Under the pieces are notes generated by a model, which saw nothing but the letters and a program-made list of their open reading frames with translations, was not told the origin of the DNA and made no database searches. Positions 2,335-56,146 of a stretch of DNA of 64,000 nt are shown one piece after another (position 1 is the stretch's first letter; each line of letters begins with the position of its first letter). Location: NCBI GenBank assembly GCA_021613535.1, contig CP075495.1:9672001-9736000 (forward strand), written 5' to 3'. The stretch is from Adineta vaga (lineage: Eukaryota > Animalia > Rotifera). The position numbers and the translations under genes were made by a program.

Positions 2335-3909
2335 CTAAATTTCTAAATCCATATGAAGTAATGGAATTAGTTGAACATGATCATCTCGATTTTGTACTAT
2401 TTCAACTAAATCAGCTTCAAGAATTTGTCGACGAAGAAAATTTTGTATAAATCTGACAGAGAAAACACAGCGTCATGGTGACCCAAACGGTAGAGAACAT
2501 ATTTCCACAGCAGTGTTAAATAATAATTTTGACTTAGAAATAAATTATTTGGAAATGAATCGAAATCCATTGAATTATATCGATCTTTTCTGAATAACGG
2601 CAAGTTTTGTGGTGATAGAGCAAGAATAAGAATCCATAATTTCATTATAACTGGATCATAAGATAGCATGTTTTCAAATGCATTCATATATTTTTCAGCA
2701 CGTTGAATAAATTCATCGGAAAGGACATATTGAAATACTAATCGATCATGTTCCCATGGAAAAAATTTTAAAACATTAGATTTCCTTAGTTCACTAGCAT
2801 TTACGGATGTTAGACATTGTAGACTATTCTTCACATATTGATAATGATTGTCTGTTGCGGATTGAAAGTTATCGAATTGTAAAATACGTTTAATAAATGA
2901 AGCAATTATAATCGTGTATTTAAATCTGAGATCAAATAAACGTTGTAGCTTAATACGTGATCGATAGGGCTGAACTGGTGGTACAAGTGAAATAGTTTGA
3001 TGAGACTCGATAAATTTCTGAACACAATATAGATCATAGGCATTTCGAATATTTGTTATTAAATTCCATTCATCCAATGAAAGAATAGTATGATCATCTG
3101 AACGTATTGAATCGACCTATATGATATAAGAAAATGATACACAACTTCTTTTCATATATAAATTAGCTTACAGTTGTTAGTTGTATTGATCGATAGTGTG
3201 GTCTACTATTTAGTGCTGCTGATGTAGCATGACTAATAGCATTTAAACTTCGGATAAGTTCTTTTTTCATACCTTGTTGAAAACATTTTTTTAAACGACA
3301 TGCTGAACAATGTCTTCTTGTTGTAATTGTTATTTCACATGAACTTGCTACTCGACAACTATAAGTTAACTTAAACAAAAAAAGATGTATTTGTTTGATG
3401 AAATATAATTACGAAGATTTATGTTGACGTACCTGTTCATTATAAGCATTACGACGAAAAAATGCTAAAAATAAACCAAAATATGCAACTTTTCTTTTCA
3501 CATTGATTAATAAGTCATATGTGCATATCTTTTTTAGGCACAGTGCACCGTATTAAATATTACGGGAGCAAAAAACATTCTCTACGAAGGAGACTATTTC
3601 TAAATATAAACTCGCTTTTTCCTTATATTAACCGTAGATAAGTTAAGTCATTCTTTTTTACATTTAAATATCCTGATTTATAAAAAAAATGAAAATGTAA
3701 ATATTCATACCTTTACATGATAAACATGTCATTGCATCGAAATTTCGTCCTTAGAAGTCAAATAGAAAGGGAGGACATACAGTCGAAAATTATATACAAA
3801 TCATAACATTACCTATTGCTGGTGCTCCACATACAGCACATAAAGAACGTGTATGCAGCATATACTCTTTAGTAGTAATATTCGACAGTAAGAAAGATTC
3901 CTTCTCCAT
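2335..3909 (-). CDS. Nuclear hormone receptor, NR1J/NR1I (HR96/VDR)-like; 5 exons; apparent 1 bp frameshift near 2462
   Basis: Spliced C4 zinc fingers [27 protein letters not shown] and CRVASSCEITITTRRHCSACRLKKCFQQGM, using 39 nt (3711-3749) and 32 nt small exons. LBD begins DEWNLITNIRNAYD. A shifted frame gives a plausible C-terminus FSVRFIQNFLRRQILEADLVEIVQNRDDHVQLIPLLHMDLEI* ending at 2335. Confidence 0.85.
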
Positions 3910-5391: not shown

Positions 5392-6350
5392 TTATGTAAT
5401 TGTACTTCCATGTGTAGTTCGACGAGTATATCGAACATAATTGGTTTGTCGAATTTTATTTCGAATTGATACGATTGATGCATATAATTCATGTCGATAG
5501 AATGGTGTTCCAAGTGTATATGCATAAAAACTTGTTGAAAAATTGACATTTAATAATAAACCAAATAGACGAAAGAGACTAACGTGTAATGCAACATATC
5601 TTGGTTGTTGAAACATTAATAGAACATATGTAACAGCAAATGGAACGTTACATACAACATTCATTGTTACATACATAAAAAGCATTTTTAATAATTGATT
5701 ATCACGTTGACGTGTACGTACTTGATTGACTGGCATAACTCGACGTCGTTGTTGACGAAGAAAAAGTAAAGTAATAGTCATAAAACTACCATTAATAAAG
5801 GTGGTATTATACATAAGAAAAATAATATGTATAAACCAATAAATTTACTATACGATGAATTTGGACTGAAACAATATGTCGAATTTCCTGATCGACCAAG
5901 TTCATACCCAAATAGAACATGAATATAACTTGTAAAAATGAATATAGCCATACAAGGAATGACATAATATGCCCTATGAACTGTAGCTAATTTTCGTAAT
6001 CTAGTATTTGTTGAACTTGTACATAAACGATCGAAACATGCCAAAACAACCAAATATGGAGAGAGTGTATATAAACTATCGGTGATATATGTTTTTAATT
6101 TACAATACCAATCATAACTTCGTGAAGGATCCATATTAAATTGATTGGCTAGCCATAATGGTAATACAACTGCATAGATGACAAGTAGATCATTGATAGA
6201 AAGTGCCCGAAAATATAATGAACATGAACTTTTTCGTAATGGTTTTCGAGAAAAAAATAGAATTTGATTAAGAATGGCACCAATTGTTCCAAAAACAATT
6301 AGAATTGGTTGAGAATAACGGGTAAATTGAAAGTATGTTGAATCAGACAT
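5392..6350 (-). pseudogene. Class A orphan GPCR, intronless, interrupted by a 1 bp deletion (pseudogene or sequence error)
   Basis: Overlapping ORFs 5778-6350 and 5392-5814 together align to the intact neighbour 7201-8175. Restoring one base (TGA CT to TGT ACT) gives PPLLMVVLCTITLLFLRQQRRRVMP, colinear with PPMLMTICCITTLILLRRQRRRVMP. Confidence 0.8.
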
Positions 6351-7200
6351 TTCTATTGCAACGTCTTTTGAATGATAATAATCATCAACAACTGAAAGAT
6401 ATTTATGTCAGTTTTTTTTCTCATTACACAATCTGATATTAAACGTCTCGCGATTGAATCAAAGAAATATCGTTATAGTTAATCTCACTTTCATTTTTAA
6501 TTATCATTGATAATAACACGTTTTTGAAGAGTTTGGAAAAAGAATGCTATGAGTGATCTGTAGTAGTCTGTATTGTATTAATTATTGATAATTCAAACGA
6601 TACGTTGATATTCTATATGAATAAATTTTCTTTCTTTTTTTTTACAGCATCTTCAAGTATATTCGTATTGATCTTTGGAAAATATATTCAGAAAGTATTA
6701 ACATTAATCCTAATGATGTATTCAATCTACTTTCTAATCTAGGCCAAGTTCTTTTTTTGTAATTATACAAAAGTCATGAAGTTCATAATCTTTATCTGAA
6801 TTTCTAAAAATATATCGTCTGAATCTAACGTTTCATGCTACGCTTTTCCTTTTCAATCAAAATCTGTAATAATAATAAGTATTAATAAGCGAAGGTGTTA
6901 ATAAGTCATTCAATCGGCACATGATACTTTTACGCTCAAAAAATTATACTCAATAATATTGTGCAAGATCTATTTCGTAAATGTCGATTGTTCTCAAATG
7001 AAATATTCGTATCTAAAGATCTTCGTAGATGTATTTTACATTAGAGGAAGATAATCATATTGTTTGCTTTCATACGTTATTTTTATTTAGAGAATATTTA
7101 ATACTCAAAAAGATAATACACATATTTTAAAAATCTAATTTACATGATGACATATATCTAATAGAAAGAAAGAATTGAATAAAATATAGTTTTTTTTTAA

Positions 7201-37200: not shown

Positions 37201-40200
37201 ATCATTTACATCGTTTAATTGATCAAAAATTAAATGTAACAATTCAAGTATCCGATGGTTTACATAAGAATAAGACAACAATTAATATTTATGTTAAATC
37301 ATTTCCTGATGCACAAGAACCGATACTTTTACATGAACCTGCTTATGCATTAACTATAAATGAATCATTAGCTAAAGGTTCAGTAATAACAAATGTATAT
37401 CGTCGTTTACAATTGACTGCATCAACAATTGATTTCATTGAAATTATTCATGATCAAATGAAATTACCATTTTCGATCGATCAACAAGGTATGATAATGA
37501 TGACTTATTCGTTTCTTTCTTTCTTTCTTTCTTTCTGTTCTCAATCAAAAAAGGATTTAAGGAGTTTAATACATATTCAGACTTATGAAAGTGATTTTTG
37601 TAGACTAATAAGTCTCGTTTGTCAATTGTTTATTTTATTCTTTTCTTATTCGTATTATATTCTCATTTATTCTCTTAATCTTACATCATAACAATTCATA
37701 CATATATATTTGTCGTCTCAATATAATGAAACGACAATTAGAATGTCTGCATGCATACGCGTGACCAATGGTGGACATCATTATACAGTCAATTCTAATT
37801 TCCTTTTCTTTAATCCCTTGTGTTGATGCGCGTGGTGACCGATGTCGGTTTGATGCATGTCTGAATAGAGATTGCTGCTGCTGTTGTTGTTTTACATGTC
37901 ATCAATCGATTTATATTGTGAGAATAGCAGCTGCTTCTGTTTCTCACTCATTCATTTATTCTACTGAGTTGTTCTTCATCAGACACTAATTACCCATCGA
38001 ATTCATTTTCTAATCGATAGATGATAAGAAATAGTCATTATATACATGTTCGAAAGGAACACATGTTCATCAAAAAAAAGAAGAAGAAAAAAAACGTAGA
38101 CATTATTGAGGACATCTGTTCAATGGGGAGATCAATCTGTAAAATAGAAAAATCGCGCGAAAAAACAATATTATTTGAAAATAATAATTCAATTAATTCG
38201 GAATTGCTTTTTTAAAGAAAATATTTATTCGAGTTGATTAAATCGATTGAATGTCAAACGATTCAAATTACATTATCAATACATGATAATCTAGTGACTA
38301 TATATTACTAGACAATTTTGATTGATATGATCAGATGACGCTTGTTCGCATGAATAGAACTTATTGTTAAGCAAATAAGGTCATCCCATGATTGAAATGA
38401 CCGGAAAAGTTTTCTTTTTCTCTATCAATGACCTTTGAATAATCGACAAGACAAAGCGATGACATGCATATTTTCTCCCTTTTCTCATCATCCTAATTTC
38501 CTTTTTTAGTTCTACATAAATTTTGCAGTCTACTTGCTAAAATGCCAGCAACGCGAGATTAATATTGACAGTCAATGTACTGTCAAATTAGAAAAGAAAA
38601 GAACGGAAGTGTGTCTTCCGAAGGGAAAACAGTCATTTTCAATTATGAAATGAAAAAAGAAAAAAAGCTTTGTTACAATTTCTCAATTTAATTCGAACGA
38701 AAAGTTTTCTTTTTTCAATCACAGAATCGATATAACCATTTCTACTAAGATGATTGTTGATTAGAATCTAGCCGATAATCTTTACTCGAATGTTGAATTT
38801 GTTTTTAAGGTTATCTTCGTCTAACTCATTCATTAATCGGTCTATCAAAATCATCATATTGGCTTACAATACGTTTGACACGTTATCGTGCTCATCCACC
38901 ACATACATTTGTTCATATTCATCTATCAATTCGACAAGAGAACTTTTATCTTCCCCAATGTGTAGATATTTATCAAAATATCAAAGTCTATGATTATGCA
39001 AATCAACATCCATTTCATCGTGTTGAAGCGATATCATCCAATCGAAATTCTCTTGTTCAATATTCAATTGATGGAAATGAAAAACTATTTTCCATTGATC
39101 AACGAACTGGTTCACTTAGTTTAGTATCATCAAAGCAAAATTCTCGTCGATTGAAATCTGATTATCTCCTAACAATTAAAGCATTAGATACTCAATATAA
39201 ATTATCAGTGAATTGTTATGTAAATATACATTTGATTCGACGACGTCAATTAATACCAAAATTTTTCTCTGAACCAATCTATAATATTAATCTATTAGAA
39301 ATTGGATTAGAGAGTGGACGATTAAGACAACGTTTATTTCAAATTGTTGCTTTATTAGAAACGAAAGTTTATAATAAAAAACTTGAAATACGTTATCGAA
39401 TTGTTGATTCCAATCAACATTTTATTATCAATCGACAAACGGGATATATTGCAACGAAACAACCATTGAAAGCTTTTACAACATATGAATTTCATGTATG
39501 TTAGAATCAAAAGTTGTAGTTTGATATAAGAAAAATTTTTCTATTTTAGGTTGAAGCATTTACTGTTGCATATCGAAATGATATTCTATCGGATGGTAAT
39601 GATAATGAAGAAGATGAACCATCGAATCGTGGTAAATGGCGTATTGTATCATCTCGTGTTACATTACCAATCAAAATTCAAATTTTACCAATGATTTCTA
39701 TGAATAAATCTTTATTAGCAACAATTGATTCCACAATAAATATTGATCTATTAACAACGACAGAAGTTGGCTCAACAATTCTACATCTTGGAATGAATAA
39801 TCGTCTTAATACAACACAATGGTTCATTATGATTGGTGATATTCGTCATACACGATATTTTCATGTCGATTTTCAAACAGGTCAATTGATTCTCATTCGT
39901 CCTATTGATGAATTAATCAATCAAACAAATCTTATCGATCTTCGTATTAATGTTACTAATGATTGGATTAATATGAATACAATTAAAGTTCTTATTCGTA
40001 TTGTAAATAATCCAATGCCATCAATTGCATTTTCTCAACCAGATTATTATAGTTCCATCTCAAAGAATATTCCAATCGGTGCTGAAATTGCTCGTTTAAC
40101 AATTGAAAATTCTGCAAATGATTGTACATATTCTATAAATTCAGTTGAACGTATTAAATCCAAAGATTTATTTCATATTAATCCATCATCAGGTTCTATA

Positions 40201-43200
40201 ACTGTTATGAATTCATTAGAAAATTCTCCTAGTCAAATGCATCTATTAACAATTCTATATCGTTGTCAACATAATTATGAAATTGCAAATACAAATTTAC
40301 ATATCAATATTCTTGACGAAAGAAATCTATTGAATCAAACTAGAAAATCATTTCAATTTGTTCAAGAACATTATTTAATTATCTTTGAAACTTCACTAAT
40401 ACAAAATCGACGAAAATATTTAATCGATCTGGAATTGATGAGTAATGAAAATGAAGACGAAAGAAAGCGAATTCAATCTAATGCACAAATTCTTCAAGGT
40501 AAACTTCATTATTCATTGTAGAAAAGAAAACAAATCTACTATCTTTTTTTTCCCTGCGATATTTAGGTGATCCATTAGGTCTATTCTCGATTGATCCTTC
40601 CAATCAATCTCTTTATCTTATTGATGAATCACTTGCACGTTCATATATCTATCCTTTAAATTTAACTATTATGGATACATCACAAATTGAACCAATAACT
40701 ACTATCGTCACATTATTTATATCCAATATTGGCATTCATTTTCCATGTCCATCATATTTGAAAACATCTCCATATCTTTTTACATATCAATCTTTACCGA
40801 CGACAAGTATTGATTCTCTCACTGGTCAACAGTATAAACCATACAATTCTTTAACTATTCGCGCTTTTGATCCATTTACACCTTTGAATGGTGAAGCATC
40901 GAATCTTGCTGAATGTAGTATCACTTCGAAATTGAATGAATTTTCTCTTCATTCTATTGAAAATTTGGATTTTATTTTCACGAATGAAATCTATTCTGGT
41001 TATATAAATCAATCATTTGGTTCATCAGCATTTATTTACAACAATCAACAAGAACCATTACATATTCAACTAAGAAATCCTTCAAAAAATTCATTTGATA
41101 TAACTTATCATTTATTGAATCAAACACATACAAATTTCTTTCAACTTGATGAATATGCTGGTTTAATCAAATATGATTCATTTGGAAGTTTATTTAATAA
41201 ATATTCTTTTCTTATCTATGCAAAATTTCGATCTTTCATTACATTTACACGTTTAAATTTGATAATTAATCATGATAATCTTCCCTCAAAGAAAACATTA
41301 CAATCCATTTATGAATTTAAATTATTTACACCATTTGTTGAGAATTCAACAATTGCATATTTGAATCAAACAAGTGAAAATTGGACGATTTTAAATGAAC
41401 AAATTCTACCAATGATATCCATTGATCAAACAGGAAGACTATTTATTAAAAATCGAACATTAATTTTAACAAATGGTAATTTCTATGATTTTCTTATTCA
41501 AGATACGAACTTAAAAATCATTCGTATACAACTAATTATTGTTACTGAAGTTAATCAAATATCTGAATGTATATTAAATCGTTTAAATTATACAAATGAT
41601 AAACAATACATTGGATTTATTGAAATTTCAAATCCTCATGAAACAGAAACGATATGTGTTCAAACAATAAAACAATCGTTTGAATTATTAAATTATAATG
41701 ATCGATTTTTACTTGATCGTCAACAGGGATTATTGCTTTATAAGAATATCAATGAAACTATTCATGAAGATCTATTATTATTAATTCAATTGGAACATTC
41801 AAAATGTTTAGTAACAATAGAAAATTCAATAGAGAAAACATCTTATTTAATGATTCGTAATGAAAGTCAATTATATATCGATTTGAAAGAGAAATATCAT
41901 ATTGAACAGGTAAAACATTTCATTTGTGCTAAAAGGAAAAGATCTGAACGATAATTTTGTTTTTCATTTAGAATTCTGGTCATATAAAGCTACAAAATAA
42001 TACCCTACTTCATTATGATATAGTTTCATCTCAATCACCCAGATTTCTGCAACAATTCTATGAATTTTTTGTGAATATTTCTGATTTAACTAATCAATCG
42101 ATCTTTATCGGTCAAATAACTGCAGAACCTTATAGTATCAATCGTAGTCAACTTGTTTATGAATTTGTTCAATCTCATAAATATTATCTTCTCAATCCGG
42201 ATACTGGTATTCTGGAATATATTTCCAATGAATTCTATAATAAAACTTTGGAACACATTCAAATCATCGTTCGTGATTTAATCTATCAACAAAATACGAC
42301 CATTAATATCACAATTCATATAAACAATTCGAATTCTATGCCATTTTCATCTCTAATCTATCAGAAAACGATTTCTGAAATTCTCCCACCAGGATCGATT
42401 ATTTTCCAAACAAATTCTTCTATCTTAGAAGATTATAATCCAAATGTTTTCAAATTGAATTCCACATCTGGAGAAATTCTACTTCTAAATTATTTAACTG
42501 AACAATTTTATTCCTTAAAATTTCGTTCATTTCAACAAACATCGATTCTGAAATTGACTATCAATGATTACAATAATCATCCACCAAATTTTATCAATCC
42601 ACCATTAAATCTATCACTTTCTTCTTCCGATACATTCCTTACAAAATTCTCTGCAAATGATTTAGATTTCAATGATAATCTTCATTTAAAATATTATCTT
42701 CTCAATTCTGAATATCATCCATTCTTTTCCATCAATCAAACCAATGGAATTCTTACAAGAACGAAACAAGCTTTAGAGAAAAATCTTTATCAATTAAATA
42801 TTGGTGTTAGTGATGGTTTATATCTAAGTAAAACTTATATTCAATTACAATTCTCGGATTATTCAGCCAATCGTCCAAAATTTTCATCGAATGAATATGT
42901 ATTTCCTTATGATTCAACAAAAGATATTCTTGGACAAATATCTGCCTATGATGCTGATCTTCATGATGAAATTACCTACGAACTTTATCTTCAACCAAAT
43001 GGTATTGAAATCAATAAACATTCAGGTTTAATTCAAATGAATAAAACTATTTTTACGAAATCGTTTATTGAATTTTACGCATCAGCAAAAGATCTTGCTA
43101 ATCAAATTGTTTATACAAGAATTCAATTAATTCATCCAGTTCAACCAAGATTTAATTCGGATTTATACTTTATTTCGTTAATTCCAACACAAGTGAAGAT

Positions 43201-46200
43201 TCCAATGGAAATCTTTCGATTTGATATTGTCGATTCATTTAATCAACCATTGAAATCTGCCAAATATCAATTAAAAAATCAAACCAATCTATTTGAAATT
43301 CAAGAAAATAAATTAATTTTAAAAGAAAATCTCGTTCCAACAGATCAATATTCGTTAACTATCAATGCTTATTGGAAGAATTTTATCATTCAAACATCAA
43401 TACAAATAAATTTCGTAGAGAAAATCTTTCATTTAGAAAACAAATCTTATGAATTTCGATTGGAAAAATCTATCTTAAAAGAAAATGATTCGATTGAAAA
43501 ATTTCAAATTAAGAATTTAACATTAAGAATTCTTCCAACTTCATTAACACAAAATAATTGTCATGAAAATTTCTATATCAAATTCAATGAACTTTTCTTT
43601 AAACGTTTTCCCATTTTATCAGATTTATGTTTTTTTGAATTGCATTTAACTGATCATATTAGTACTTCATCAAGTCAAGTCAAAATTCTCTTTACAAATT
43701 CAACTAATCAACCACAATTCTCCTCGTCAATCTATCATTTTTATGTTTACAATCACAATAGCACTGATCAATTTCGAGTATTTGCACAAAGTTTAAATTC
43801 AATTCAATATAAATTACAAAATAATCCTTATGGTTTAATGATTAATCAAACAAATGGTATTCTTCAATTTATGTATCAATCAAAATTAATTGAAAATATC
43901 AGCCGAATACACTTGAATATCTATGCAATTGATGAAACAACCAATGTAAATAGTACAGCCATAATTGAAATTTCATTCAATGAACGAAAACAATTCGATA
44001 TGCCAAAAAATCATTCTCAAATAGACATCTGTCCCAATTTACCAATTGTACTTTCTGATCGAAGTTTACCGGGTAAGTTGAAGACAAATTACCTCAATCT
44101 CTAAACTCTCATCCACACTTCTGAGTCACGTTGATAAGAAATCTCTTTCTATTGTTATTTTTAGGTACTGTCATTCAAGATATTAGTTTGAAGAATAATA
44201 TTTCGAATAATTATTATATTCTTTCGGGAGATGACTATGGTCTATTTGCGATTAATAATCTTGGTCAACTTTATTTAACTTCATCAATACTTAATCAAAC
44301 ATTAAATGAATATTTTGAATTGATGATTTTTATGTCATCATCATTGATTTATTGTCATACAAATATATCGATTATACGAACACCCAAATGGTCATATTTT
44401 ATATGTCCAGCGGTAAATCATCATCATCATCTTTTGTTTTTCATCTTTGTTAGAAAACTTTGATTTTTCTTCAGATTCCAATTCGATGGATGATCAAAGA
44501 AGAATCTCCGATTGGTACAATTCTTGGTACAGTAAAAGATACATTGTTATCAATCAATAATTCATCAAAATTAATCGATCAATTACAATTTAAATTAACT
44601 ACAATGAATAATCCTGATGCACAATCATTTCTACTCAATTCTCAAATAGGTTCGATGAAAATTGATTCATTAATTTCTTTAAAAGTTTTTTCATTGAAAT
44701 TTAGGTTTAATCACATCGAATTCACGACTTGATTATGAACAAAAAACTTTCTATTCATTTTCTATTCAACTACAACCAAATGAATTAAATTGTTCCATTT
44801 CAATCGTCATCAAACTGATTAATATCAATGATAATCCAATTGTTTTCGATCGAAATTCTTTAGTTTATAATATTACTGAAAATAATCTTATACCATTCTA
44901 TGTTGGTCGTCTCAATTTAATTGATATCGATCGATTATTTCAATCGAATTATGAATTTTATCTTCAAAATTCTTCATCACATATCTTCATTGATCAAACA
45001 ACTGGCTCGATTCTTCTCTATGAAAAACTCAATCGAGAATATCATGGTTCACAAATAATTTATCAAGTCAAGGCAATTGATACTAACAATCGAGAGAATG
45101 CTTTGTCGGAAAAACTCATCCTCAATATCATTGATATAAATGATCATGGACCGAAATTTGAGAAAAATTTCTATTCGATTAATATAAGTAAAACAATTCG
45201 ACCAAATACGAATATATTTCAAGTCAATGCTACAAGTGAAGATTCTGTTATGAATGGAAAATTTCAATATTCTTTAAAAAACGCATCGAATTATTTTCAA
45301 ATTGATGAACATACAGGAATGATACGTTTGAAAACATCTCTTCCATCGATGTTGATGAATTTAACTGTACATGTTGAAGTCTTTGAAGACGAAATTAATT
45401 TAACCGATTCTACAAATGTATTCATATCAATTATTAATGATGATAATATTTATTTTAATTTCGAAAATCAAGATAAATGTTTTCTTGATGAAAATCAAAA
45501 TATTGGAACGATTATTTGTACGATTGGAAGAAATTCTGATGAATTTCTTTATGAATTAATCGATACAACAAATGCTTTTCAAATTATGAAATTCAATGGA
45601 ACAATTCTTAGCAAGAAAATATTTGATTATGAAACTGATCCTCATCAATATAATGTCACAGTAATTGTTAAAGATCGAGAAAATCAAGTAGGAAGAAGTT
45701 TTTACTTAGCGAAAGATAATGAATATACTTTCGTTTTCTTTAGACTGTTCCATTATCTTCATTTAATCTAACAATTTCTATTCGTAATATTAATGATAAT
45801 CATCCTGAATTTGTAACAAAGAATATGACAACACTTGTTTATCTATATCATCCATCGATCAATACAATTATTCATAAAATTGAAGTATTTGATAGAGATC
45901 AATTGAATTTAACATTTCAAATTCTTAATGATACATTTTCATCATATAAACTTTTTTCATATGAAAATACAACAGAATTGATTCTTAGTGAACCAATTCT
46001 TTTTGATCATGAAGATTATCTTATTATTCGTGTTTGGGATAATCAAACATTATCATCATCATATAATCTTGATCTTCATTTAAATATAATCTATCTTCAA
46101 CGTGATGTATCTCTTCCATCAATACTTCCACATACAATCGATGGTTATATTAATCTTGAAGAAAAATATTCACAAATTAATTTTGGTGAAATATTTCTTC

Positions 46201-49200
46201 AAAATCAAACGAATTATCAATTTATTTCATATAATTTACTTTCAAATCAATATTTTTCTTTAAAACAACTATCAAATAATCAAACAGACTTATATTTTAA
46301 TTCCTTTCAACAACAACAATATCTTCATCAACAAAAACATCAACGTTTATTACAATATCAAATTGAATTAACAACTTTTGCTATTAATCAATCAATGCCT
46401 GATATAAATTTTTCTAATCAGACAATTTTCTATCTTCCAACAAATATCAAATCTCAATTGAAATCTCATTTGATCGATATACATCTATGGTTAATTGATC
46501 GTGAAATGTTAGATCGAACGATATCAATTGTTATTAATATAAATCCTCAAACAATTTATGAACAATTTATTATTCATAGTTTACCATTAATACGTGAACA
46601 TCTTGCTGCAATCGTTGGTGTTCATATGCGTCATGTACATTTATATTCATTCGATATGAAAACTCCCTATCAAATTGAATTACTTGTTGCTATTATTCGT
46701 TATCCATCACGTTTACGACCACCACGTTATATTCATAAGAAATTACTTTATAATGTTTTAAAAAATTCAAGTGAAATTTTCGAAAAAATTCCTCATATTA
46801 AATCAATTGAAAAGATTTCGATTAATCAATGTCATACGAAATCATGTGAAAATAATGGTCGTTGTACAAGTCAAATTAAATTATATCAAAATCAATATGA
46901 TTATTTCTATTATAATACATATCAACGTTTAATACCAAAATATCAATGGAATATCAAATGTCTTTGTTTAAATCATTTCTATGGACAACATTGTCAATTT
47001 AAACAAGATTATCAATCACCATGTTCATCCAATCCATGTTCATCATTAGAAAGATGTATTGAAGAAAGTTCAACATTATATACATGTCAATGTATTGATG
47101 AACCATGTAATCAAAATGAAATTCTTTCTGAAACAACATTAGATTGTATTAATATTAATTCACCATCATGTCGAGATTCATCGAATACTTTAACATTTGA
47201 TGGTTATAGTTTTGTTCGAATGAATTCATCATTAAATTTCACTCAACATACAAACTTTACATTTACATTTCGAACGCAAGTTGGTCAAGGCAAATTACTT
47301 AAATTGATATTTTTCGATGAGAAAAAGAAACAACAGATATTGATTATTCAAATAACTGATAATCTTGTAAATCTCGAATTAAATAAGAAAATTCTTTTTC
47401 GAATCGATGAAATAACTATTAATGATGGTCTATGGCATCATATCTACTTTTCTATTGATTATACATTAACAAATCAAAATTCCTACTATCTTCTTCGTCT
47501 TGATCATGTTTTTAGTAATAGAATTCAATTCTATCAACCATTTTCAATCAAACAATTAAAACAAATTTTCATTGGAAATGATTTTCATGGTTGTTTTGGA
47601 AATTTAACAATCAACAATCAAACAATTCTTATACAAAAACAAGAAAAAAATACTTCAATTGAACATATCGGTACAAATAATGGTTGTCAATTAGCAGAAA
47701 TTGAATCACGTACATTACGACAATATACGGATAAAGATGATCTTTGTTCTTTATATCATCCATGTTATCATGGTGGTATATGTGTAAGTCAAACAACAAA
47801 ATATGGTTTAAGTTTTACATGTAATTGTTTAAAACCACGTTTTACTGGTCGACAATGTCAACGTGATTTACAACCATGTGAAAGTCATCCATGTTTATTT
47901 AATGAACAATGTATACCATCGAATCATATGAATATATCTTATACATGTATATCATCATTAGGAAACCTACCTATGTCAACAAAGAATCTTTTATATATTG
48001 GTTTAGCAGTAACGTTCTGTACATTTATATTATTTATCCTATTGTTTTTATCATTGATTATCTATTGTCAACAACAACGAAAGGAGAAGAAACGAAAATT
48101 GAATATTCAACATGATAAACCATTAGTGTCCGCACCATTATTAATTCCAAAATCTTCACCAACATCAACACCAGCAAATCCAATTGAAAGTCCAATGCAA
48201 ACGTTATTGAAACGAAGTCCAAATGGTAAACAAATTATTGAAACAATGGCATTAATTGATAATAACGTTGAACATACGACATTGAATAATTTTAATGATA
48301 AGGTATGTTGATTGTTTCCATTCTGAGATAAGCGAATTCATACAATGTGATGTTAAAGAAGTAGATGTATAGAATTCTAATGAAATCTTGTTTGTTTGTT
48401 TTTTTAGCAAACTAATCCTCCAAATAATAAATCATCTCTCTCGATTGATAAACATCAATATGAATCTCATGAATCATTAAATCGTCGTCGAGTAAGTTCG
48501 ATAAATTTCACAAAGAATTCAAGATTCTATACGAAACATATCATTTAGAGTGATCCAAAATATTATTCAACTATCGGAAAAATGAATATTCCACCAGATA
48601 ATTTTCTTAATCATTATAATAGTATTGATTATGGTTTGTTATAATTTTATTCTATGATTTCAAATTGTATATCTCTCTCTCTCTGTGTCTTTTAGATACA
48701 ACACGTATTCCACTTGTTGATCCACATTCACCAGATCTATTTGACTGTAAGTAGATTTCATAATTTATTTTATAATATAACTGATTTTTTTCTCTCTCGT
48801 TCTATTCAGTTCCATCATCACCAACAAGTAAGTTCTTTATTTTTCCTGAAATTCTTTTGTTTTACCTATATATATATTTACTTTCGTAGAATATTTCAAT
48901 GGTCATGATGATAATCATTCCAATAATTATCAAATACGTATTAATTCTCTATCGAATCTAGCAGAAAAACTTGTGGAACAAAATGATATTGAATTAACTC
49001 ATTCATCGAATGATTCATCAAATAATGAACAAACTTTATTAACATCACCTATCTCTAATGGAGAACGTAAACGTTCTCTATTCAATGGTGGTAGTTCACA
49101 TAGTGTACGTGCATCGAATTCATCCTTACAAAAAGCTCCAGTTTATGCAAAAGTTATTAAAAGTAAAGAATTTCACAAAAGAAATTGGAAAAAATCCATT

Positions 49201-49691: not shown

Positions 49692-50340
49692 TATTCAGAT
49701 GAAAGAGATACAGTGTGTGCCTTACTATTACTATTATTATTGTTGTTGTTGTTATTGTTGTTTCATGGTCTTGTTTTGTATCTGTAAATCTTATTTTCGA
49801 CCCGGTGCTATTTTTTTTCTGTTTATCTCTGTCTCTTTTTTGGCTAATCTATATGAAATATTGAATAAATAAATGTGCACGAATTTTCATATTCAGTTTA
49901 TTAAATCTGAAAACGTACATTAGAAATTGGGTACATTATGGACAGACAGTTTGCACTTTACCACACACTTATAAGTAAAAATGTTCATTTCGACATGTTC
50001 ATTTTATATAAACACTTACAAGATTACACCTTGAGTATAGGACAATTGATGTTGTCAGATACAGTGTTTTGAAAATATATCATAAATAAACATTGTCGAA
50101 GTTGTCTACAACTTGTCTGTCCACTTCACATAAACATTTAGTAAGCTTCATCTCCTATATACCAATAACAATGATCAATTAAAATAAAGTAACCATTTTT
50201 TTTCTGTAGAAGTGTAAGTTTGTTCATTATTATCATATTAACAAAGTGTTTTATACAAAATAAAAAAGTAAGAGAAACTAGTCAATCATACCTATTGAAT
50301 AGAAATAAAGACAAGTGTTTGTTGCTAAACATGATTGAGA

Positions 50341-51807
50341 TTATGTCAGACTGAGTAAAGGCACAAAATGATTAGGTTTCCATCCATTTTGACTTTCTTT
50401 GGAATAGATACCAGGTCGACCTGAACGTGAAAAAAGTAATTTGATCTCTATCGTTGCTGATGATGTTAATGGTTCTATTTTTTTCTCTTGGTCATCATTA
50501 TCATCAATCAATGCTATGAAAATAGCAGTGTTTATGTGTAGAAAATATGAATCTTTGTCACCATTCACTTTTGGATAAGCACACATAATACTAATATTCA
50601 ATACAGTTGGAATACTGAGAAGATCCCAAGCAGATACATGAGTTGAATCACGAACCATTTCTTTTGTTACATAATCTTCGAAATTTTCTAACAATGCTGA
50701 TAGATGTGCATATTGAGCTTGATAACCATTGATATTGAGAACAAGTTCAACAATATTTCGTGCTCGAAGTTCAACTGCTGTTAATGTCAATGAATGTGTT
50801 GCTGAACCAGCTTCAACTAATCGAAGAAATGAATTATAAAAACAGTTTCCATCTCCAACTACAACGAGTGGCATGGAACTTTTAAATTCTTGTGTACAAT
50901 GATTTTCTAGATAATATTCTGCGACAACATCACGTTTATGAATAGTTGGATCGAATCTTTGTACTGGATTATAAGAAAGTGGATAAGATCTTAAAATAGG
51001 TTTCAATGCTTTACATTCAAGTACAAGTTCGTTATAAGATTTTTCGGCAGCCATACGTAATCGTGCTAAGAATACATTGAATAATTCTGAACGTGCTAAT
51101 TCCGAACAATTTAAACATAAAAGTTGTCGATCAAAAGGTAACTGTTCATTTTTACAAAGTACACAATAACGACTTAATGCTGTTGATGTCAATGATCTGG
51201 TAGGAATTGATATTGAGCTTGTAGCATTTGCTTCACTATTGATTTGTTGAGCATAATTTGTCCATGCTGCTTCTTGTGGAGGAAAATGATTTGCTCCACA
51301 TGATATTGCTGGAAATGCAATTGAAGACAATTGATAGAGATTAGCTAGTATGAATGCTGTATTATAACATGATTGTAATAGAAAAGCAGCACGTTCTTTT
51401 TCTGCTTCAGTATAGAGTGGACCCACAGTATTGATCACAAATGGTACATCATTTTCTTCCGCTTTAAATTTTCCAATAAACATACGTGATTGTCCAACAG
51501 GACAGGAATTTTCTTGCATAGCCTTATGAATGGATACGACTTGATCCGTATAAAATTGACCCATCTTTTCATGAATTAGACGATCAACTCCTCCGTTTGG
51601 ATTCATATATTGATTCGTTGAATTTACAATTGCATCACATACTTCTTGACTTATATCACCGTGACGAATTAGTACAGCTAAAGAACCATTCTTCAATGTG
51701 AAACATGTGCTATTATTGTCAAGTTTTTTGATTTCACTGAATAGATCAATAACGATATCAAATATAATATGGATTCATTCTCAAATAGATACTTACATGC
51801 CGGACAT
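50341..51807 (-). CDS. Macrodomain + CxxC/CxxC zinc ribbon + OTU-like (A20/vertnin-type) cysteine protease fusion; 2 exons
   Basis: 11 nt first exon (ATG 51807). Macro motifs GDI, DAIVNSTN, GGVD..IH, VINTVGP and SIAFPAISCG; CVLC-x13-CLNC; OTU motifs GDGNCFYNS and WKPNHFVPLL. Confidence 0.85.
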
Positions 51808-52162
51808 ATTAATAAACGTAATATTTAATCAGAAATATTTCACAATTTTTTTTCCAACTTGATGCTATTCAAATAAATATAAAACCTTCACCATACTTGT
51901 TCTTTTACTTGAATGAAAAAAACGTAGATAAAGTTATTCTCGCTTGTTTTTTTTCTTCTTTTCCTTCTGTTAAAAACACAAACCACATGTTTTTATCGTG
52001 TTCTCATTTACGATAGAACAACCGACGACAAATAAGAAACATATGAATAAAAGTAAATCAAAGGAAATGAATTTATTGCTAGAATTCTACATAGACATAT
52101 AATAAACAGAAAGAAAACAGATTCTTATAGATGAGAGATGAGAATGAAAGAAAAATTATGTT

Positions 52163-54223: not shown

Positions 54224-55994
54224 TCATCGTTTTAAGTTCAAAAGATTATCGGTCAAACTACCAGCTATTGACGCATTTGTAGTTGTTGTTGTTGCACTGG
54301 GTGTTCTTGGTGAACTTTTAATAATTCCAATACTTAAGGGCGTTTTCGGTGTTCGATCACCGATAGCACTACTTCGTACAATGGGTGATGGTGTTAATGC
54401 ATGTTGTCGTTGTGTACTTGTAGATTGCGTACGTTGAATACCAAGACGGTTGGTTAAGAGACGTTGTGCTGCTGGACTCATACTTGATACAAGTAATCCT
54501 TTCGTTTGTTTTGAACTGTTAGAAGATGAAAAATTTCGATTGATTGTTTTCATTGCTTCGAGTTTCTTTTTTCGATGTTGTGCAGCATTCTTTTCGACTA
54601 ATTCTAAAGCTAATTGTTCGCGTACAGGTGTTTCTATAATTTTAAATTGTGGTCCCCTATTAATTGCGCATGGTGTCTCATTGCCTGCATCCAAACAAAA
54701 TGGTGTACCTTCAATTTGACCCCATGTCATCATTGGTGATTCGTCACCATGAGCACCAGGCATCGGGGATGGTGTTACAACAAAGCCATAGCCACCGACT
54801 TGTGGACTTGCTGTGTTTCTAATTTCTTGACCGCTAACATCGAATTTTGGTTGAGTCATTGCATTTGGACGAGCAGGTGTATCCGACGAGTCGAAGAATC
54901 AGCTTTTATTGTAAAAGGATCCACATCAAAACGAGTATTGGTATGATGAATAGCACGAACATGTTTTGCTTGTTCAATTTTTTCTGCTGCAGTCAGTTTA
55001 GCACCGTCAGGAACATACATAACAGCATTTTTAACAGTATAAGGCCAAAATTGTATGGAATCAGGATTATTTGTTTTGACTTGATCTTCAATTGATGGAA
55101 CGGGTAATTGATGAATTGGTTCACCGTCACTACTCTATAAAGATTTAAAAACAGTATTTTGTTGATGAGTTAATTATTTTTATAAAAAGGAAAGAAACAA
55201 AAGTTTCATACCGAATGTGTCAATGCTTGTTGTTCATAGAGCCAAGCGTGATGAACTTTACTACGGTCTTTTTTTTGTGTTTCTTCCATGATTTGTTCAA
55301 ATGAAAGGTTATCTTCACTCGTATTAATACTTAAATATTGATCAAGTCGAAGATCACGTGGCTTTTCTATAAAACAAAATTTTTACATGTGTCAAAAGTA
55401 AACGATTAAATGAAAAGAATAGAAATACATACTACGCATAGTTGATGTTGATGTTAGTGATTGTTTATCAAAATCATCATCATTATCACCAGTTTTTCTC
55501 CGACTGGTAGGTAATTCGTCTTCATCAAGTTCATTATCCTTCATTGTTTTTGGTGTATCAAGTCCTCTGTTAATCGGTGTTTCAAATGAACTTGATGGTG
55601 TATCTAAAAATTTTAAAACTTCATTATAATAAATTTTATGAAAGAATATATACATACCTCGAATACCCATCATCGATGGCGATGGACTTGGACCACGATG
55701 AATACTATATTTTGCATGCATATCTCTTAATGTTACCACATCATTTTTTTCAAGAGCTGTGAAATATTCTGCTTGTGCTCGGAGACGTTTTATATCAGGG
55801 AAAAAATCTCGCTCAATAATATGTCCTAAATCTTGAACAAATTCTTCTTCAGCAAGAATTTTACGTTTCTGTCGACGAGAAGATGGTGGTTGTTGTGTGA
55901 GAATTGCTGGTGGTAATGGTTTACGAAAGATATCAACATCTTTTTTAGGATTGTTTGATGTTGATAAAGATATTTCTGATGTATCATCAGTCAT
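54224..55994 (-). CDS. ESS2: Splicing factor ESS-2 homolog (DGCR14)
   Basis: KILAEEEFVQDLGHIIERDFFPD, LDQYLSINTSEDNLSF, GYGFVVTPSPMPG, SPMMTWGQIEGTP and MSPAAQRL. Confidence 0.92.
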
Positions 55995-56146
55995 GACTAT
56001 CAATCTAGAAGAAAAAAGTAATAATTATTATTAGAAAAATATTATGTAAAATAGCTAGAATATCTATAGAGTACAAATAAAACGCTTGATTATTCCACGA
56101 TATTTTTTTAGAAAAAACAACGGAATGATTATATTCATAATTAACA

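Follow-up and report, generated by a model that had tools for sequence, protein, structure and literature searches.

The field that deals with the interplay of ADP-ribosylation and ubiquitination is young and takes in the ADP-ribose-ubiquitin made by Deltex, the reader-writer ligases, and the viral Mac1-PLpro pair. We know of no cellular enzyme that joins an ADP-ribose module to a deubiquitinase. The Mac1 and PLpro of coronavirus nsp3 were proposed to dismantle ADP-ribose-ubiquitin marks in sequence (PMC12687431). The A20-like OTU Cezanne trims K11 chains on ADP-ribose-linked ubiquitin (Ub-ADPr) (PMC12583694), and OTUs are largely devoid of esterase activity, whereas TRABID has it (PMC7848729). 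The gene described here was found in the bdelloid rotifer Adineta vaga, on the minus strand of a stretch of 64,000 nucleotides (hereafter, the window; positions 9,672,001 to 9,736,000 of contig CP075495.1, assembly GCA_021613535.1). It combines a macrodomain, a zinc ribbon, and an OTU protease domain, and it is a candidate ADP-ribose-directed deubiquitinase. Its features, in window positions, are as follows.

51797-51807, minus strand: exon 1, i.e., the ATG at 51807 and 8 more bases (M-S-G and the first two bases of the codon for I), ending in phase 2 at a GTAAGT donor.
51737-51796, minus strand: intron of 60 nucleotides, GT..AG, with its CAG end at 51737, skipped in the contigs of three runs.
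50341-51736, minus strand: exon 2, an open frame that runs to the TAA stop codon (50343-50341) and holds all three domains.
51265-51735, minus strand: MacroD/YmdB-type macrodomain, residues 5-161 (Pfam PF01661), with its C-terminal end missing in this assembly.
51262-51268, minus strand: junction (51265/51264) of a 99-nucleotide (33-codon) in-frame gap, as compared with the transcripts and all homologues.
51178-51264, minus strand: short, disordered linker of low complexity, residues 162-190, variable and gapped in alignment A1, with a predicted local distance difference test (pLDDT) below 50 in the whole-protein model.
51106-51165, minus strand: C4 zinc ribbon CxxC-x12-CxxC (C195, C198, C211, and C214), assigned by conservation, pLDDT about 90.
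50344-51105, minus strand: helical arm and OTU protease core, residues 215-468, assigned by the model and fold matches.
50929-50931, minus strand: Asp273, candidate third residue of the triad, invariant in alignments A1 and A2.
50842-50856, minus strand: GDGNC, the loop of the putative catalytic Cys302 (G300 and C302 invariant, D299 and N301 at least 90% conserved).
50356-50373, minus strand: NHFVPL, the strand of the putative catalytic His460 (P458, N459, H460, V462, and P463 invariant).

A single mRNA encodes the macrodomain, the zinc ribbon, and the OTU domain in A. vaga. As transcript evidence, contigs of four public runs (X7, X10, X11, and X18) were compared with the window. The contigs of X10 and X11, from one study, and of X7, from another, showed the joint 51736 to 51797, with plus-strand ends CT..AC. 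From the exact skip of 51737-51796 it follows that the runs derive from RNA, that the intron is genuine, and that all domains lie on one mRNA. The same contigs span from about 51876 to beyond 50150, i.e., from the 5' untranslated region through the stop codon, which removes the doubt raised in the first-pass annotation that transcripts might not join the domains. About 15 single-base sites over 50150-51950 differed between the window and the run contigs, and among the runs; positions 50443, 50465, and 50466 were variable in run X18 only. These differences suggest haplotypes or strain differences of laboratory lines.

The open reading frame (ORF) on the minus strand has 451 codons (50341-51696), and the frame stays open upstream to 51774, where no in-frame ATG was found. 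The start codon is supplied by the first exon, and the two-exon model is identical (100%) to the database entry "hypothetical protein I4U23_008790 [Adineta vaga]" (P0001, 468 residues), of which residues 5-468 match exon 2 at 100%. In the existing annotation, the gene appears only as hypothetical or "Macro domain-containing". For homology searches, exon 2 and P0001 were used as queries, since exon 1, with 11 nucleotides, is too short to search. The first-pass annotation, made from the DNA letters of the window, had placed a macrodomain, a Cys cluster, and OTU motifs in one reading frame, and all of its listed motifs were found in this minus-strand frame at the places it gave. The Cys cluster was present at 51165-51106, but its spacing is x12 instead of the x13 first given. 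The coding sequence is indeed nearly intronless, with one 60-nucleotide intron after an 11-nucleotide first exon.

The C-terminal domain is an OTU fold by structure prediction. The sequence evidence for it is weak, and fold comparison settles it. The model of residues 186-468 had a pLDDT of 84 and a predicted template modelling score of 0.84. In Foldseek, the top 50 matches in the PDB were all OTU or otubain structures, with A20 first. By VIA-align over model residues 33-283, VCPIP1 gave Z 10.8, A20 and Cezanne 10.4, and TRABID 10.2; 55 chains reached Z of at least 8, and minimal OTUs scored Z 8-9.5. The best match in ESM Atlas was a Vertnin cluster (template modelling score 0.68 over 220 residues, root-mean-square deviation 3.0), followed by a cnidarian OTU cluster. 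An A20/vertnin type of OTU had been proposed in the first-pass annotation, and the matches to A20, VCPIP1, Cezanne, TRABID, and the Vertnin cluster agree with it, as does the profile-search relative P0128, which is named Vertnin by UniRef. That annotation had also allowed for a C-terminal domain of some other fold, and the structure model and fold searches gave OTU. In sequence-profile searches, the Pfam OTU domain was matched at E ≤ 1 in 8 of 29 family members (best E 0.00095), and more distant members of the clade exceed the cut-off. When the family profile was run against PDB sequences, only EschOTU was hit for the OTU part (E 0.31). No Pfam match beyond Macro was obtained for the window protein, i.e., none to the Vertnin middle domain, transposase, or helix-turn-helix (HTH) domains, and the Vertnin_mid profile was possibly outside the library.

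The catalytic motifs are well kept in the family. GDGNC was found in 58 of 60 members and PNH[FY]VP in 56 of 60, and the GDGNC and PNHFVP motifs run through the wider OTU clade. Cys302, His460, and Asp273 are invariant and the whole motifs are retained over deep divergence, which argues for catalysis. No acidic residue follows His460, and the invariant Asp273 lies 29 residues before Cys302. This placement presumably recalls the unusual upstream Asp70 of A20, a role assigned by analogy and not on coordinates, and Asp273, lying before the Cys, is probably the third catalytic residue. Deubiquitinase activity is predicted on the basis of fold and triad. For the OTU part and the rotifer's own ubiquitin, complex prediction gave a score of 0.02, where the mark was 0.34, and this was weighed neither way. 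In the zinc ribbon, C198 is invariant and the other three Cys are at least 90% conserved (alignments A1 and A2); weak Pfam zf-C4pol and DZR_2 matches to it were obtained in some members.

The macrodomain was recognized with Pfam Macro PF01661 at E 5.5e-22 (78.4 bits against a cut-off of 22 for the window protein). The best PDB matches were E. coli YmdB, O. iheyensis MacroD, and human MacroD1. The motifs GDI, DAIVN, GGVD, TVGP, and FPAISCG are present in the window frame. In the homologue alignment, the Asp of DAIVN that contacts adenine is kept, as are N-x6-GGVD-x3-H and the first loop-2 Gly, and because of this the macrodomain likely binds ADP-ribose. N-x6-GG-[VL]-D-x3-H is intact in most of the 60 family members, and the catalytic Asn is replaced in about 10 paralogues. 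At the third place of loop 2, the family has N in 28, F in 16, and Y in 8 members, and the fourth place is never Gly.

The MacroD type named in the first-pass annotation was borne out, but that annotation took the macrodomain as intact and overlooked a gap of 33 residues in the window copy. In alignment A1, with 29 homologues, 33 consecutive residues between ..PPQEAA and WTNYAQ.. are absent only in P0001. In the homologues, this stretch covers the last helix of the macrodomain, its last and central beta strand, and the beginning of its final helix. The contigs of X10, X11, and X7 break at 51265-51268, each with 95 unaligned letters and a 4-nucleotide overlap; the transcripts thus exceed the window by exactly 99 bases at this point, the presence of the segment being judged by length. 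Full-length transcripts were expressed by animals from at least two studies, whereas the deleted form was not seen in any read or contig of the four runs compared. Because the transcripts carry the 99 extra bases, the deletion is either allele-specific or an assembly error. As the mRNAs from three public runs are full-length, the working protein is most likely the 501-residue version. The window copy may be a damaged allele, i.e., a real 99-nucleotide deletion in one haplotype that leaves a dead macrodomain and a live OTU, with the working protein supplied by the other haplotype. This is evenly poised in our judgement. The gap is in frame and exactly 33 codons long, and the 4-nucleotide overlap fits a microhomology-mediated deletion; the transcript contigs also differ from the window at several single bases, as a second haplotype would, and the macro part of the deleted form models poorly. 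However, the lack of any deleted-form read or contig among the four runs weighs against it, the alternative being an error of assembly.

The fusion was found in approximately 60 full-length protein clusters at 90% identity, and every named one came from Adineta or Rotaria. The fusion is not due to chance, because both domains are conserved across these homologous clusters. The gene family could be found only in bdelloid rotifers in these sequence searches. In literature searches, no paper on a macro-OTU fusion, on bdelloid macrodomains, or on vertnin with OTU turned up, which agrees with the first-pass annotation, where no characterised animal gene with this layout was known. The "OTU" of a bdelloid DNA-repair paper was set aside, as it means taxonomic units and not the protease domain.

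Relatives of the zinc-ribbon-OTU part were more widespread. An exhaustive profile search with this part gave 753 cluster representatives at E ≤ 0.001, and among the best 150 of the 753 no macrodomain was found outside the family. Among the relatives are further zinc-ribbon-OTU families of bdelloids, a Rotaria cluster with a fusion to a Helitron helicase, and PHD-OTU-MULE transposase proteins, e.g., of the oyster Pinctada. The suggestion of a transposon-related OTU in the first-pass annotation fits these PHD-OTU-MULE proteins of the related clade and the Helitron-linked copies. In the OTU tree, the macro-fused OTUs formed one clade, apart from one 280-residue fragment nested within it. Its sister group was the Didymodactylos OTUs without macrodomain, and the MULE/PHD group lay across the deepest branch.

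Didymodactylos is held to branch early among bdelloids, and the annotation of this genus has one gene for the macro part and another for the OTU part. The stand-alone macro protein has 199 residues and is 51% identical. Its gene is placed as follows.

Contig CAJNOK010007451.1 (locus L013), 6001-6654: stand-alone macro gene of Didymodactylos carnosus, with the 11-nucleotide first exon and phase-2 intron that the A. vaga fusion also has.

The stop codon of this gene falls where the linker begins in the A. vaga fusion. In the simplest reading, an older macro gene probably gained the zinc-ribbon-OTU module at its 3' end after the Didymodactylos split. The module would be of the kind that travels with MULE and Helitron elements, and the older macro gene would have stood alone. 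Alternatively, the separate Didymodactylos genes may be products of a fission.

A second full copy was found in A. vaga on C5 (P0035, 501 residues, 48% identical). This copy lies 2.3 kb from a galactokinase paralogue, and the gene of the window lies 4.5 kb from a galactokinase. Because this syntenic ohnologue adjoins the galactokinase paralogue, the fusion is regarded as a host gene. The two copies are ohnologues, and the fusion is therefore old. The recent assembly proposed in the first-pass annotation does not hold, since syntenic ohnologues are present on two chromosomes and the fusion is common to Adineta and Rotaria.

For the macrodomain, the nearest non-rotifer relatives among the matches listed were bacterial YmdB-like proteins (Streptomyces and others; 38-43% identity, up to 135 bits), from a search biased by the database make-up and the length window. 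With the same macro profile, human MacroD1 scored 87 bits and E. coli YmdB 89, scores that do not separate bacterial from animal relatives. These matches give a hint of a bacterial source of the macrodomain.

In the A. vaga genome, the PARP catalytic domain was matched 82 times at the exon level, and about five loci have Deltex DTC domains, two of these loci being in tandem on C6. Because these domains are present, writers of ADP-ribose and of ADP-ribose-ubiquitin exist in A. vaga. On C5, macro and PARP domains occur together in at least two long open frames (3954007-3955857 and 2118822-2120714).

On balance, and with moderate confidence, the whole is best explained by a bdelloid host-gene family in which the macrodomain, the zinc ribbon, and the OTU act together as a putative ADP-ribose-directed deubiquitinase. 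In this explanation, a real, transcribed host gene of A. vaga would belong to a family restricted to bdelloids as far as found. The macrodomain would dock on the mono-ADP-ribose of a modified protein, with or without removing it, and docking would put the tethered OTU beside the modified protein. The OTU would then cut ubiquitin or a ubiquitin chain from the ADP-ribosylated protein. Several points weigh against this. The window protein stays below the cut-off of Pfam OTU PF02338 (13.2-14.2 bits against 23.3). The MacroD loop-2 pattern G-[VIA]-[YF]-G does not occur in the window copy, which has G-A-N-H; because the loop-2 aromatic residue and second Gly are absent, and the catalytic Asn is lost in several paralogues, ADP-ribose hydrolase activity is doubtful. 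In the whole-protein model of the deleted form, the only form so modelled, the pLDDT was below 50 over residues 1-190 and about 90 in the C-terminal half, which is consistent with a crippled macro fold in that form. Vertnin is a known DNA-binding factor, and protease action may thus not be general in the clade. This last point leads to another account of the OTU, i.e., that it does not act on ubiquitin, being directed to another ubiquitin-like or other substrate, or being a non-catalytic scaffold or a vertnin-like DNA-associated module, while the macrodomain acts alone. The closest structural cluster is Vertnin, which bears transposase-type HTH domains, the relatives are transposon proteins without known substrates, and the low Pfam OTU score would fit as well. 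However, the strict invariance of Cys302, His460, and Asp273 and the retention of GDGNC and PNHFVP over deep divergence are hard to place in it, and all solved structural matches are deubiquitinases. We consider this account unlikely.

A two-step eraser was also weighed, in which the OTU would cut the ubiquitin ester or the chains on it and the macrodomain would then remove ADP-ribose from the protein, like nsp3. Both eraser-type domains lie in one chain, most members keep the macro catalytic N-x6-GG-V-D-x3-H motif, and the genome encodes Deltex DTC domains and many PARPs. The proposed sequential cleavage by Mac1 and then PLpro (PMC12687431), the trimming of K11 chains on Ub-ADPr by Cezanne (PMC12583694), and the esterase activity of TRABID, a top structural match (PMC7848729), are in line with it. 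However, OTUs are largely without esterase activity (PMC7848729) and loop 2 of the macrodomain is degenerate in the clade, and such a sequence of steps appears improbable. By analogy, the protein might even be a dedicated eraser of ADP-ribose-linked ubiquitin (MARUbylation), whose macrodomain would read ADP-ribose and whose A20/TRABID-like OTU would cut the ubiquitin ester or a K11 extension; we rate this a long shot. That the gene belongs to a transposable element, and not to the host, is extremely improbable. MULE and Helitron proteins do contain related OTU modules, and several OTU copies in the genome are decayed. However, only two full copies exist, at syntenic ohnologous positions, orthologues are kept across genera, and no transposase lies nearby, the neighbours in the window being ordinary animal genes, i.e., cadherin, Es2, and GHMP kinase. 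A transposon identity of the gene itself was therefore discarded on copy number, synteny, and neighbours, and the ADP-ribose-directed deubiquitinase of a host-gene family is preferred.

Some observations were made on the neighbouring genes. Es2 (DGCR14-like) lies at 54224-56003 of the window on the minus strand, between the fusion gene and the galactokinase. No second copy of Es2 was found in the genome, whereas both its neighbours keep ohnologues on C5 (about 8.87 Mb). At 39691-48311 on the plus strand, long open frames with cadherin repeats were found, with EGF-like Cys patterns and a transmembrane end seen by eye. The region probably makes up a single, very large gene of protocadherin/Fat-like type whose introns are short. 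The DNA of the window is that of an animal and is rich in AT, with a GC fraction of about 0.3.

Other OTU copies of the A. vaga genome were also noted. At G000:C2:13144466-13148191 (L004), the ORF 961-2313 on the minus strand encodes a 450-residue zinc-ribbon-OTU protein with an extra C-terminal domain. It stands head-to-head with an AAA ATPase ORF, 2874-3611 on the plus strand (Pfam AAA, E 1.8e-30). Another contig bears its relative P0073, again with an AAA gene as divergent neighbour. The AAA ATPase p97 is a partner of VCPIP1, which is the best structural match of the OTU clade. At G000:C1:17727826-17731443 (L010), two ORFs were found on the plus strand, 1495-2175 and 2358-3116, including a 226-residue OTU ORF with GDGNC and PNHFVP. 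The second ORF, which follows the OTU ORF, has Arg/Gln-rich repeats and a CxxC, and the arrangement resembles the beginning of a Helitron-type element. Stop codons interrupt similar OTU copies at L005, L008, and L011, and a decayed zinc-ribbon-OTU was found at L009.

The fusion is built from known parts and, by its sequence, is a natural candidate link between ADP-ribosylation and deubiquitination. A conserved, expressed fusion that is kept in two ohnologues across bdelloid genera gives a "Rosetta stone" argument that both activities would be directed to the same targets. The protein is compact, with approximately 500 residues, and is directly testable on defined substrates. It would also be a case of a transposon-type OTU module taken up by a host gene, in a lineage noted for acquiring genes and for extreme DNA repair. 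If the dedicated eraser of MARUbylation were true, it would be the first cellular enzyme built specifically for the ADP-ribose-ubiquitin hybrid mark. Bdelloids are famous for surviving massive DNA breakage, and this would then be the setting in which such an eraser evolved.

Compared with known systems, the macrodomain belongs to the same fold family as the MacroD/YmdB deacetylases of O-acetyl-ADP-ribose, i.e., E. coli YmdB, O. iheyensis MacroD, and human MacroD1/2, which score 87-92 bits with the rotifer family profile. It differs from them in loop 2, which is G-[AV]-[N/F/Y]-x in the rotifers, and in being joined to a protease, and the window allele is without the last helix and strand. For the OTU, the best solved structural matches are the A20-like OTUs, i.e., A20/TNFAIP3, Cezanne/OTUD7B, TRABID, and VCPIP1, with Z 10.1-10.8 and both arm and core covered. 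The Cys and His loops are common to them and the rotifer OTU, although the identity is only 13-19%. In contrast to these enzymes, the rotifer protein has no zf-A20, NZF, or ankyrin parts, and a C4 zinc ribbon stands before the arm. Nearest to the rotifer OTU, by predicted structure and by profile, are Vertnin and the PHD- or zinc-ribbon-OTU proteins borne by MULE and Helitron elements. They have in common with it the GDGNC ... PNHFVP signature and a zinc module ahead of the OTU, but they bear transposase, HTH, PHD, or FLYWCH parts and no macrodomain. Unlike the transposon-borne proteins, the rotifer fusion is called a single-copy host gene. In coronavirus nsp3, Mac1 and PLpro likewise put a macrodomain and a deubiquitinating cysteine protease in one polypeptide. 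However, PLpro is USP-like in fold, belongs to a viral polyprotein, and is not homologous to the rotifer OTU, so the likeness of the two systems is one of analogy and not of membership.

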